NCBI GenBank assembly: GCA_965603825.1 | Contig: CBFDEM010000010.1 | Coordinates: 124,001 to 188,000 of the forward strand | From: Blepharisma stoltei ATCC 30299 | Lineage: Eukaryota; Protista; Ciliophora | Reading direction: 5' to 3' | Length of the DNA stretch: 64,000 bases | In this document: piece after piece, positions 41,665 through 48,308 of the stretch | How positions within the stretch are numbered: position 1 is the first letter of the stretch | Layout: each line of letters begins with the position of its first letter | The notes under the pieces: model-generated | Database searches by the model: none | What the model saw: only the letters and a program-made list of their open reading frames with translations | Told to the model about the DNA's origin: nothing | Translations under genes and position numbers: made by a program

Positions 41665-42151
41665 GATTTTATTATAACAAAAAGCTAGTAGAACATGGAA
41701 CTGGAAACTTAATAATTATGCCACATATTTTTTTTGCACAAAAGAACTCAAAGGAGATCCTTAAAAATGCAAAGAAATAATATTATCTTGGCTGAAAGGA
41801 ATCATTTTTGCAATTTTTAATCCTTAATCACAATCATTTAAATTTATCTTTACCCAGTGTGCATAATTTTAATATTATATGAGGGGTGAATTTATACTAA
41901 ATTATAATGGATAATCTTAAGGATACTTTCTACGCTTTAATTTTGTTCGTGATTGATAAACTTTAGAATAAATTAATTTTTATCACCATGAGAATCTTTT
42001 GCTGCTTGAAGGTAGCATTCTTCATTAGCAATGATTTTTTTTATCAGTATTTCTTTAAAGTTTGTTTTATAGAAATTAATTGTACTAATTCTTGAAATAA
42101 AATTTAAAATAAATAACGATTTATCAATAATAAATCAACACTCATTTCTCC

Positions 42152-43540
42152 ATGGGATCATATCTGTCATCTGGAGGAAGTGCAATTTTGAATTTCCGAA
42201 GGCCAGTAGACTTTTTGGCCAGCATGCTAACTAAATGTAAACTCTACTCAGGAACCAAAGAAGAAATCCTCCAAGCTTTTCACAAATTTACTAGCATTCA
42301 AAAACCTGGAGACTTCATCACAAATATCGGTGGACTTCGAATTATTTTCAGATCAACAAACGCTGAAGGAATGGAGTTTGAAATTTTGAGACTATTCAGC
42401 AATAAAGGAAAAATCAATGTCATGGAAGTTATGGCTGTCATTGTCATCTATGCAGCTATCTCATGGAAGGAAAAAGTCAAAATAGCCCTTTTTATGTTTG
42501 ACTTCGATGGTAATAAAGTTATTTCAAGGGATGAAATGGATGTGCTGTGTCGATCCTTCCTAAGGGGTGTAGCTTGTGTAACTAAAAGTCCATATGCAAC
42601 TAATCAAGAAATTGAGGATATTTCAGCTCATGTTTTTACATGGGCAGACAGGTTTTCCAACAATAAAATTTCTTGTGAAGATCTTATAGCTTGAGTTGGG
42701 ATGAACCAAGAAATCCAAGAGTTATTGCAAACGAATGAGCCTCCTCACTCATTAAGGAGCAACACTATGAAGCCAATGTCTAATATTTCAAAAAACCCAA
42801 AGACTGAAAGTCATAAATCACCTCACAGGCCAAGACAAAGTGCATCATTTGACATTTCAGAAAAAATAAGACTGAAAAGTATCAATACAATGAAAGCCCA
42901 TGGTAATTCCAACAGCCCAAGGAAAAGAAAGTTCTTTGTACGAGCTAATCAAACCACTCTTTATACTCGAGACTATATTGAGAGTTTGCATTCAGCTTTT
43001 CAGAGAGTTGAACAGTCAGGAAAAGTTGCATTTGACAGTAATTTTTACATAGAGCTCATAGAAGAATTATCCCATCATGAAGTATACAAAGAATTAGTAG
43101 AAGACCTAAAATCAGATGCACTCGCAGAAATAAAAAGCGAGCTTACTTTCAGAGATCTACTGAGCATTGCTTGCAGATCTTCTGATGAAAATCAAATAAA
43201 AAGGATGCTCAGATGAATAACTAAAGATCACACGCCATTACCAAATATAAGAACAAATACCAATCGAGGTAAGAAAAAAGTCTCTTATGAAACAGCTAAT
43301 ACTTATAGGCGTCTCTTTGAAAAAATTGATAAAAATCGTGACGGAACAATAGATTTCCAGGAGTTGAGATCGGAATTTCGAGATTATATGGGAAGCTCGA
43401 CTATAGAGCAATTATTTAAAGAATATGACTCAGATAATAACAATAAGATAGATCTACCTGAATTCATGAAGCTGCTGGCTCCTCATGATTCTTTTATCCC
43501 TGATGAAATTCTTGAGGCCTTTACATCATCTCCAAAATAA
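42152..43540 (+). CDS. EF-hand calcium-binding protein, about 457 aa
   Basis: DFDGNKVISRDE, DKNRDGTIDFQE, DSDNNNKIDLPE; N-terminal MGSYLS myristoylation-like motif; TGA at 42692 and 43214; probable intron 43038-43052. Confidence 0.88.
43038..43052 (+). other. Probable 15-nt intron without an in-frame stop
   Basis: gtaatttttacatag matches the consensus exactly; frame is preserved with or without splicing. Confidence 0.7.
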
Positions 43541-43776: not shown

Positions 43777-45954
43777 ATGTCCAATTTGCCGTCAGAATCA
43801 GACCCATCAAAACCTCGAAATTCCCCAGCACAGTCCAAAAATCCTGATCAATTTAGTGCACCTTCCCGCCCAGGAAACCAGCACCCAAACCAAGCCGGTC
43901 AAAATATTTCGCCAGCCCCAGTACCAAGCCATTCCCAAAGCATGGCCGATATGATCCAAATAACAATAGCAAGTGTCCGAGAGTTAGGCTTTCAGAGATA
44001 CCGCACAAATCATAGCGAAAAGAAATTTAGCATTATGTTCGCAATAACAAACCAAGGTCAAAGCACTGGTGAAAGATGACGCACTTTCCCCCTTGTAATT
44101 GAAATTTCTGAAAAAATTTTTTGTGTGAGAGTTATTTTTACAATAAATAACGAAAGCTTCAGGTTCACAGATGAAAATTTGATGGTATATGCATTGGAAT
44201 TTATTACAATATCAAATTATGGAATGCAGATTGGCTGCTTTAATATAAGTCAGGAAAAAAAGTACTTAGTCTTTGAAAGCAAAGCCTATTACTACTCTTT
44301 GGAGCCTCAGTGCTTAGGAAATCTGGTAAAAGAGCATTTAATGAAATCAATTGCTTCATATAAAACTTACGCTTTTGGACTGGTGTCAATAATTGACTGC
44401 TATCAAAAAGGGGTACCAGTGGAGCCCAGACAGTTCGTAATACAAAGCGAACGAAGAGGCAAGATACCTAACGCCAACCCTGCCCAAGAAAGAGAACAAA
44501 AGCGTGAAAACGATAAAGACTCTAAACGAGAAGAAGGCTCAGACTCAGAATCTGACTCATCTGGACAAGCTGAAGATAACAGCAGTGTGATTTCTTCAGA
44601 CTCAAGCTCGAGCAGACGAGACAATGACACCCTTGAAAAAGAAAGAGAACTATTAGAATTCATAAGAACCAACGAAATCCTAAGAAACAGCTTTGACTTC
44701 CAAAACTTGAGCAGGAATGAAAAAGGATATGTTTATGAAGGCTACCAATCTTCAACTCTTAGAAAGTTTTTAGAAATCGCAGAGTTTGATAGAGGGCTTC
44801 TGGATAAAATCAAGTATACATTAAAAGAAATGTATGAGCAGAACTTGGAATTTATCAGTTTTCCTAGTAACTACATTTCAGTTCAGGAAATCGAGCCTGG
44901 GAAGATAAAATTCCAGTTTATCCCGAAAGATATATCTAAAATAGCTAATAAGCGAACAGAAAACTCTCCAAGTGTGAAGGAGTATGATATTAAGATGTCA
45001 AAAGAGCTAAATTCGCTGCTCTGTCAAGTGATTTCAGACAGATGCCATGTGAAATACCAAATAAATACCCAGGACATGATCCCTCCCCAAAATTTCAAAA
45101 ATAAAGAACTGCTGGCAGATGAAAATATCATTGGCCATGGGGGCTTTGGAGACGTCTATAAAAATGAATTGCATGGACAAGAAGTCGCTATAAAATTCCC
45201 AAGAGAAGTAAAAGAATCAGAATCCAAAGCAAAGCGAAGAATTGCGAAAGAGCTCCAAATGATGAAATGCCTTCCACATGAAAATATTGTAAAAGTATTC
45301 GGTGTCGTTGAGTATGATAAAAAATTAGGCCTAGTCCTTGAATACTGTAAAAATGGTGGTCTTAACACTTATGTTAAAAAGAGCCCTACAATAAGTATGA
45401 AAGAGCGCATTGAAATGCTATTTGGAGCAAGCTTAGGCTTGGAGTTCATGCATTCTAAGCAGATTTGCCACTTCGATATCAAACCTCATAATATGTTTCT
45501 GAACGAAGAAAACGTAGTAAAACTTGCTGATTTTGGGATGAGTGAGCATCTTGAAGAAGGAAAATCATTTAAACCTGGATTCACGCTACTTTACTGCTCT
45601 CCTGAACAAATTAAAGGGGAAAATCCAGGTATGAAAGCTGATGTTTGGTCGTTTGGCATGAGCATGTATTTTGTTAGTCATGGAAAAGCACCATTTGATT
45701 ATTTAGAAAAAATGAAAGGACACAAGCTTGAGAAAAAAGAATTTTATCAAGAATTAAAAAAAAAATTAAGAAAACCAAGGGTGTTAGAAGAAGTTGAAAG
45801 AAACTTTCCAAGATTCGTGTCTCTTATGAGAGAAACATGGAGTGAAGCACCTGATAGAAGACCAACAATGAGAGATGTTAAAATAGGCTTGAAAAATGCC
45901 TTAGCAACAATCCTTAATAGAATTGGCGATAAAGAAGAGGATCTTTTGAGATAA
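43777..45954 (+). CDS. TKL-like protein kinase with an N-terminal YbjN-like domain, 725 aa
   Basis: GHGGFGDVY, VAIK, HFDIKPHN, DFG, SPE, DVWSFG, W...PDRRP; TGA at 44077 joins the N-terminal ORF. Confidence 0.9.
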
Positions 45955-46000: not shown

Positions 46001-46237
46001 ATGAGTGCAATCCCAGAAACTCTGAACCCAAAACCATTTTTGGCTGAGTGCATAGGACATCCTGTTGTCGTGAAGCTGAAATGGGGAACCGAATACAGGG
46101 GGATTTTACTAGCCTATGACAAGTACCTCAATTTGCAATTACAAAATGCCTTTGAGTGGATTGCAGGAGAAAACAAAGGACTTCTAGGGGAAATTTTAGT
46201 CAGATGCAATAATGTCCTTTATGTGAAGCAAGATTAA
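46001..46237 (+). CDS. SNRPF: Small nuclear ribonucleoprotein SmF
   Basis: [31 protein letters not shown]. Confidence 0.95.
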
Positions 46238-46301: not shown

Positions 46302-48308
46302 ATGGAAGATTTGAATCTGAAGAAGCCACCAAAGATCCAAGTTCTGAATACAGAAGTCCCTGAAATTTCCCAGCCAGTCTGCAAAATAAGAAAACTAACG
46401 GATATAGCTGAAGACCCTCTTGAAGTTATGGATGATGACGAGATCCCATATATGACATCAAGAAAATCAAGACTTCATAACAAAACACAACTAATTGGAA
46501 AGCACTATAATCCCTTAATTTCTCCTCGAGATTCTTTAACCCTCCCTCCGATTGACAAGACTTTATTGTTCTATCAGAAGTTTTTATTAGGTCTGCTAAA
46601 GCATCCTGAGATATATAGACAATTTAAGGAGCAAGCTATTAAGCAAGACATTTTAGCAAAGATAAACACTCCTATAAATACCTGCAGAATGTCTTTTAAT
46701 TTAAAAGAGCCAAATAGGCTGAAAAATATTGAAGTTCACTCTGTTAACGCTTATAAAAAGTTGCATGAAAGTGATAAGAAAAATAATGTGCTAGATATGA
46801 TACTGAAGACTCCTCAAGCGAAGCAGGATAATGATAAAAGTCAAATCTCTTTGAAAAGCATAAAGCATAGCCGAAGAGGGTCAGCATCAAGGGCAAGCTC
46901 CAATTCACGACGCTCTTCAACCCGGAGAATAAAAATATATAAGTGCCAATTGGACAAAACCAGTAAAGAGCTATATGAGATTTTTTTAAAAATATCAAAA
47001 ACACAAGAAAACTCTCATCGAGACCAAAGAGTTACTAGTGAAGCTTTAAAGGAGTGGCTATTGAAGCGATATCCTCAAGAAATGGTTGAAGTGATGGCAA
47101 AGGCAATTGTCATCGAAGGAAACCAAAATTTTGATTCATGGTCTTCGATTATAGAAAAGTTCATAAATTCCAATGACACCAAAATATTGAAGTTTTGCTT
47201 TGAGCTTTTTGATTTCAATAAAGACAAATATATATGCACTCATGACGCCTATTATGCAATTTCTTTAGATTGCAGCAATCTATATGACCAGGATATTGTT
47301 AGGATAAGAGAATCAATGGTCAGCAAGCAATCAAAAAAAGGTCACAACCAAAAAATGCCTAAGACACATATAAGAAGGCATAGTACTGCTTCGAGTGGGG
47401 ATGAAGAAGCTAAAAGGGTGCCTTATATCCATCCAACAAAGCCTGAAGCCCTTACGGTTGAAGATTTTTTAAAAATAAGCTTCATTGGAAAGCCTCAGAT
47501 TTTCCAAGATATCATTTCTTATCTGACAGGCTATAATATTAATTCTTCCTTATTGAAGCCTGAATCTTCATGCCATACACGAAGACTAAGCCAAGACATT
47601 GTATATGATATTCGCTGCCAAGAAGAGTTGAAAGATTCTTATAAATCAGACCCAAGATATCAATATTATTTAGATCTAGATGAGATGATGCACAAATTTG
47701 ATCTGGCAGAGAGCGAAATGGTGCTGGAAAAATTCGAAATGCTGAAATGTCCTTCATTTCGCAAAGAAAAAATGATTTCTTTGAAATCAACGATCGAAGT
47801 GTGGCCCACAATTTTTGGCTTTAAATGCGATTACGTATCAAAGCTATTCTATGGGATTCTGGCAGGTAAAAATCGAACCGATATTACGAAAATGAGCTTT
47901 TTAAAAAAAATCAATGAAATTTTCAAGGGAAGTAGTGTAGATCAAAATAAATTTGCTTTTGATTTGTATGATAGAAATATGGATGGGATACTTACATGTG
48001 ATGAGATTAATGATATGTATGAGTCTCTGCCTCAAAACACTCCAATTTATGATGAGTGCCAAATGTAAGATATATGCAGACTAGTTAATGAATTTCTTTC
48101 AAGTATTTTTGGTAAAAGGCATAAGCCATTAGACAACATAGATTTTGCTCTCTTTTCTGAATTAATTCCAAAGTCATTATTTATTGATGTAAGATTCACA
48201 TAGGAATTCATTGGAGCATTAATGACTCCTAAGACTGAGCTTCCACGAAAGTGTATTTCTTTTCTTGAAAAAATACCGGAAAATCCTAACAAAATTATAA
48301 ATATATAG
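46302..48308 (+). CDS. EF-hand protein, 658 aa
   Basis: DFNKDKYICTHD and DRNMDGILTCDE loops; introns 48065-48079 and 48189-48203. Confidence 0.82.
48065..48079 (+). other. 15-nt intron
   Basis: gtaagatatatgcag. Confidence 0.85.
48189..48203 (+). other. 15-nt intron
   Basis: gtaagattcacatag. Confidence 0.75.

Follow-up and report, generated by a model that had tools for sequence, protein, structure and literature searches.

A YbjN/type III secretion chaperone-fold domain joined to a non-RD kinase in a gene family of the ciliate Blepharisma stoltei

The window analysed here is a 64,000-nucleotide (64-kb) stretch of the heterotrich ciliate Blepharisma stoltei ATCC 30299, and its subject is one gene on the + strand (43777..45954; all features of the gene given below are on this strand) that joins a domain of the YbjN / class I type III secretion system (T3SS) chaperone fold to a protein kinase. 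With UGA read as Trp, the gene is a single frame of 725 codons, from the ATG at 43777 to the TAA at 45952-45954, and an intron-free reading suffices. The sole internal TGA is codon 101 (44077..44079), decoded as Trp101: the corresponding column holds Trp in 41 of 55 homologues, the paralogue L016 has TGG, and a JGI contig (L010) keeps the TGA. UGA as a sense codon is also the best reading of the window as a whole, and both UGA = Trp and introns of 15-16 nt have been described for this strain (PMC9942806). Contig L010 aligns with the gene over 2200 nt, ungapped and at 92.5% identity; it starts shortly upstream of the ATG and terminates in an A-run, suggesting that it is the transcript of a related Blepharisma. 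The only intron-like 15-mer in the gene, at 44867, is kept in this contig and hence is not spliced there. The single frame and the ungapped contig support the original prediction of one gene after TGA read-through, and the motifs it quoted are found in the predicted protein, which we searched and folded in pieces.

The YbjN / class I T3SS-chaperone-fold domain occupies residues 55-212 (43939..44412; limits approximate) and follows a Pro/Gln/Ser-rich N-terminal tail (residues 1-54, 43777..43938) that is likely disordered. Its similarity to YbjN is beyond chance: it scores 49.0 bits, whereas none of 2000 shuffled sequences exceeds 10.0 and the reversed sequence gives -0.3. A ciliate-only profile reaches bacterial YbjN proteins at an E of about 1e-4 (1.8e9 proteins searched), the reverse profile search matches the domain of the window at 48.8 bits (hhalign, 97%), and the ciliate and bacterial profiles match each other at 98.6%. 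The domain has the alpha-beta3-alpha-beta2-alpha fold of the YbjN / TY-chaperone superfamily, so that profile and fold comparison agree on the fold proposed from the sequence alone. The closest known family is YbjN itself (PF10722), with the structures of DR1245 (4h5b), AmyR (5fr7), E. coli YbjN (6vu7) and T110839 (2plg). Compared with that family, the ciliate domains are eukaryotic, fused to kinases and longer in their loops, and none in B. stoltei scores above the Pfam cut-off: PF10722 has no match in the pieces of the window or across the genome, where the best score (L016, 15.7 bits) falls under the gathering cut-off of 22 bits. Word-based homologue searches return a near-identical protein only, or nothing; PDB sequence searches with domain profiles give no match, nor does the phage collection. 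The best-conserved stretch, residues 141-155 (44197..44241), forms the end of helix 2 and the following strand, with Asn147 conserved in 96%, Gly153 in 77% and Phe155 in 74%. In YbjN structures the matching region is the dimer interface (PMC5398634, PMC3575483), and a role in dimerisation is compatible with the conserved residues.

The kinase domain (residues 440-712, 45094..45912) is an intact Ser/Thr kinase (Pfam Pkinase, E 7.7e-52, 176.7 bits). The Gly loop, Lys473, Glu492, Asp567, the DFG motif (585-587) and an APE-like motif are all present, and by this complement of motifs the kinase is predicted to be active. In the catalytic loop (45469..45492; His565-Phe-Asp567), Phe566 sits at the position of the Arg of RD kinases, and Phe or Leu is found there in 11 of 11 intact homologues. 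An intact non-RD kinase had thus been correctly called, while its assignment as tyrosine kinase-like (TKL) needs softening. The structural neighbours are mostly tyrosine kinases (TK) or TKL kinases (IRAK4, CTR1, Lck, FES, BRAF, Roco4) and the sequence neighbours are mixed (BRSK2, a Src/Abl ancestor, MARK, ULK1 and DLK, at 94-101 bits); "TKL-like" is therefore the label that can be supported. Across the B. stoltei genome, a catalytic-loop pattern gives RD in 478 of 591 matches (control matches, 1 and 20), and non-RD loops make up about 16-19% of kinase catalytic loops, or roughly one kinase in six.

Between the two domains lie a flexible linker, charged and then acidic/Ser-rich (residues 213-278, 44413..44610), which has a low predicted local distance difference test score (pLDDT), and a middle domain found throughout the family (residues 279-426, 44611..45054). 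In kinase terms the middle domain (pLDDT mostly 83-97) would reach from helix C through strand 8, closed off by one more helix; it has neither a Gly loop nor the VAIK lysine, and both the catalytic Asp and the DFG motif are missing. Against TYK2 the whole model aligns over 376 residues, starting at residue 178 of the model and residue 645 of TYK2, whereas single kinases align over about 260, and it likewise aligns to the EGFR kinase-domain duplication (EGFR-KDD). The part of kinases to which the middle domain aligns begins at helix C and extends as far as the DFG position; the best PDB sequence match of the middle-domain profile, a CDPK, has the same register but is weak (E 0.18). The hhalign comparison with the protein's own kinase is also weak (P 0.008), and the top match outside the family in the B. 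stoltei genome is an ordinary kinase. Four weak signals concordant in one register make a truncated pseudokinase a likely identity for this domain, which the original prediction overlooked together with the wider family.

Measured against contig L010, the ratio of nonsynonymous to synonymous substitution (dN/dS) is 0.027 in the YbjN-fold domain, 0.035 in the middle domain, 0.028 in the kinase, 0.03 in the linker and 0.14 in the tail. The protein, which unites the YbjN/T3SS-chaperone-fold domain with a kinase that has its full set of catalytic motifs, is under strong purifying selection. Within five clusters of near-identical homologues, variability is not consistently higher in the domain than in the kinase; by this indirect test (dN/dS and the five clusters), diversifying selection on the domain is not detected.

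The family comprises 12 genes in B. stoltei. Nine have the YbjN-fold domain: the terminal kinase is intact in four and a pseudokinase in another four, while one gene stops after the middle domain. The other three (L049, L075 and L076; G000 C5, C18 and C11) lack a YbjN fold but combine the middle domain with a non-RD kinase. Four of the nine bear an extra upstream domain, divergent and chaperone-like, at the position of the N-terminal tail. It aligns weakly with bacterial YbjN and not significantly with the main domain, and we tentatively read it as a second YbjN copy. One paralogue (L017:3004-5466; G000:C10, about 455000-457500) has, close to the N-terminus, a basic motif resembling an AT-hook, as well as a pair of chaperone-like domains; its kinase folds are all dead. 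YbjN-like genes that stand alone also occur: three of them, each encoding about 155 residues, form their own branch in the domain tree (C45:114125-114592, L042; C43:346836-347255, L043; C40:359583-360002, L068); the copy on C45 lies about 5 kb from the fused paralogue L013. Paralogue domains are 17-27% identical outside the nearest paralogue, and linkers and tails are not conserved among paralogues.

Among other heterotrichs, Stentor coeruleus has a family member (SteCoe_36953); further homologues are on contigs of 35% to 50% guanine-cytosine content (GC), and the three inspected show intron-like gaps of 15-16 nt, as is typical for heterotrichs. The catalytic loop is missing in 31 of 42 long homologues. 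Among the matches carrying a name, none is from another ciliate class, although most matches carry none. A GC-rich, heterotrich-like contig of another species holds four family genes in tandem, all apparently pseudokinases (L032:814-11689), and in one subfamily (P0044, P0061, P0069 and P0078; L156:861-3194) a long low-complexity insertion splits the YbjN-fold domain after the fourth strand.

This distribution bears on whether the fusion could be an artefact, with two separate genes read as one, contigs misjoined into a chimera or contaminating bacterial DNA. Under the standard code the in-frame TGA does break the frame, but UGA is Trp in B. stoltei, and the fusion recurs in nine paralogues and in dozens of proteins from relatives with the standard code. 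The neighbouring genes are eukaryotic, encoding an EF-hand protein upstream (42134-43537) and an Sm/LSm protein (46001-46237) and a second EF-hand protein (46302-48065) downstream; GC is even, and the transcript-like contig has no gaps. An artefact is effectively refuted. A GST gene is also among the neighbours, and, contrary to class I T3SS chaperones, which are encoded with their secretion system, the gene lies among EF-hand, Sm and GST genes. Compared with those chaperones (SicP, CesT, ExsC, SycN and VecA; Pfam clan CL0097; TY-chaperone superfamily, PMC9503650), the ciliate domain comes without a secretion system or cognate effector gene, and its sequence link is to YbjN rather than CesT.

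The best explanation, to which we give an even chance, is a soluble three-module heterotrich signalling kinase in which the YbjN-fold domain would pair and grip a client peptide while the half-pseudokinase would restrain or dock the kinase. No transmembrane segment or signal peptide is evident in the 725-residue protein (highest 19-residue hydropathy 1.5). The YbjN-fold domain would pair through helix 2, and the pair would clamp an extended peptide of a client protein, as bacterial YbjN and class I chaperones do. The protein described here has a single copy, and its partner could be a second molecule of itself, a pseudokinase paralogue or one of the three stand-alone YbjN-like proteins; where a member has two copies in tandem, these would pair with each other within the chain. 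Either event, pairing or the binding of a client, could then bring kinase domains together or, in the manner of Janus kinases (JAKs), lift the restraint imposed by the adjacent half-pseudokinase. Being non-RD, the kinase likely does not depend on activation-loop phosphorylation, so that control would rest on the YbjN-fold and middle modules. The client would most likely be a conserved ciliate protein or a generic unfolded segment. We infer pairing, peptide grip and kinase restraint alike by analogy. Like JAKs, the protein would be cytoplasmic and place a putative peptide-binding module before a probable pseudokinase (JH2 in JAKs) and a TK/TKL-like kinase predicted to be active (JH1 in JAKs), and the model aligns across both TYK2 domains. 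Unlike in JAKs, the input is a YbjN fold and not FERM-SH2, the kinase is of Ser/Thr type and non-RD, and the pseudokinase has only about 145 residues and no ATP-binding N-terminal strands; homology to JAKs is not claimed.

Several points weigh against this explanation. Taken alone, the sequence comparisons do not reach significance for a pseudokinase in the middle of the protein, and the model, with a predicted template modelling score (pTM) of 0.55, does not reliably place the middle domain against the kinase. The single-domain fold test took the paralogue L016 (25% identical) as its query, with an alignment of 74 rows, nine of them bacterial. The YbjN-fold domain is absent from three relatives and so is not required by every member. 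In addition, the domain could be a pure scaffold that only dimerises the kinase or anchors it in a constitutive complex, for example a cortical or ciliary one, with no sensing. Conservation confined to core and interface residues, the majority of pseudokinases among members and the strong purifying selection all suit such a role; however, partner-binding bacterial YbjN proteins show the same conservation pattern (PMC5398634, PMC3575483), and the surfaces of the paralogues are widely diverged, as for different clients, leaving a scaffold rather unlikely. The disordered segments on both flanks of the domain, together with the purifying selection on the linker (dN/dS 0.03), could alternatively point to an intramolecular chaperone or inhibitor that binds its own tail or acidic linker. 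We hold this to be very improbable, as linkers and tails are unconserved among paralogues and the model has no such contact.

The domain had originally been cast as a sensor or dimerisation input, perhaps responding to bacterial proteins. Dimerisation fits the conserved interface residues, while the response to bacteria fares less well. Heterotrichs feed on bacteria, and when bacteria that are ingested or live as endosymbionts inject effectors, a decoy chaperone domain could catch these by their chaperone-binding segments and trigger a defence kinase. The fold common to the domain and class I T3SS chaperones would suit this role, as would the non-RD state of all 11 intact family kinases counted, the divergence of the paralogue domains and the four-gene tandem array in another species. 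The probable kinase-pseudokinase layout and the non-RD state also resemble the tandem kinase immune receptors of plants (PMC8761531). Like the plant tandem kinase proteins with integrated domains (Rpg1, WTK1/Yr15, RWT4 and WTK4), the protein would be a soluble kinase-pseudokinase tandem with a non-RD active domain and an extra N-terminal domain; unlike them, it has a different lineage and domain and shows no sign of rapid diversification, and any immune role would be putative. Pathogen sensors of the plant tandem kinase kind usually evolve rapidly, whereas here the dN/dS of the domain equals that of the kinase and the five near-identical clusters show no consistent excess of variability. Moreover, the family is small (12 genes), non-RD kinases are common in the genome, with the 11 family cases being one inherited trait, and the sequence kin are YbjN proteins, not effector chaperones. 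YbjN proteins act independently of T3SS (PMC5398634). An intracellular sensor of bacteria is quite unlikely; it survives as a reading because recognition of a conserved structural feature would evade the rapid-evolution test.

YbjN-kinase fusions also occur on eukaryotic contigs that are not heterotrich-like. P0081 (L029:402-3041), on a contig with longer introns and adjoining VPS4-like and fused IGPS-PRAI genes, encodes a non-RD kinase together with two YbjN domains, which pass the Pfam cut-off at 40 bits, and what is probably a PH domain; the middle domain is absent. An intron-containing contig (L056:647-2156) has two YbjN-like exons leading into the N-terminus of a kinase. Two metagenome scans found no relatives of the second eukaryotic fusion. 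The kinase tree left the P0081 kinase unplaced, on a long branch, and P0081 and the heterotrich fusions may derive from a shared or a separate fusion event. It is improbable, by our reckoning, that protists feeding on bacteria have, in at least two lineages, joined a secretion-chaperone fold and a non-RD kinase into a detector that recognises injected bacterial effectors by the chaperone-binding segments they share, convergently with plant tandem kinases; if true, unicellular eukaryotes would possess a class of immune receptor that acts inside the cell.

The domain tree separates three branches: the heterotrich copies fused to kinases, those that stand alone, and the second eukaryotic set (support 95, 98 and 92). 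The fused ciliate domains are one branch by the Shimodaira-Hasegawa-like approximate likelihood ratio test (SH-aLRT 95-96), outside the sampled bacterial group; the bacterial sample is narrow and comes for the most part from gut Bacillota and Synergistota. A horizontal origin of the domain in this lineage, as first proposed, is neither supported nor refuted by these trees: the fold is mainly bacterial, but a topology with all eukaryotic copies as one clade is not rejected by the approximately unbiased test (p-AU 0.69), and no donor is resolved. There may have been one old acquisition or several separate ones. Among 88 bacterial copies read, 87 are short stand-alone frames and none is fused to a kinase, with a kinase nearby at one locus. 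One bacterial tandem-YbjN gene (L055:3597-10999) lies beside another YbjN gene, an AAA ATPase and a leucine-rich repeat (LRR)/ADP-ribosylglycohydrolase (ARG) gene, recalling ARG-linked TY-chaperone systems (PMC9503650).

A 2026 review describes the clan as predominantly prokaryotic and names the ATG10-type domain as its sole eukaryotic member (PMC13466201). A kinome survey of Stentor coeruleus, whose genome includes SteCoe_36953, counted 46 TKL kinases and mentions neither YbjN nor a YbjN-kinase architecture (bioRxiv 10.1101/168187); Pfam scans miss the domain. As the original prediction supposed, no link between YbjN and a eukaryotic kinase is described in the searchable literature, from which the bulk of subscription papers is missing; for some proteins, domain lists in databases may nevertheless show the two together. 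The architecture is real, apparently undescribed, and assembled from known parts.

The YbjN/T3SS-chaperone fold is the putative input module of a conserved heterotrich kinase family, alongside stand-alone copies and a second eukaryotic kinase fusion. The half-pseudokinase, if confirmed, would be an unusually small kinase-fold remnant retained family-wide. The function of YbjN is poorly understood in bacteria too, and a version wired to a kinase would directly report the binding partners of the fold. With family members and RNAi both available in Stentor, the question is testable, and if the client were bacterial, the family would provide a rare molecular handle on protist immunity.
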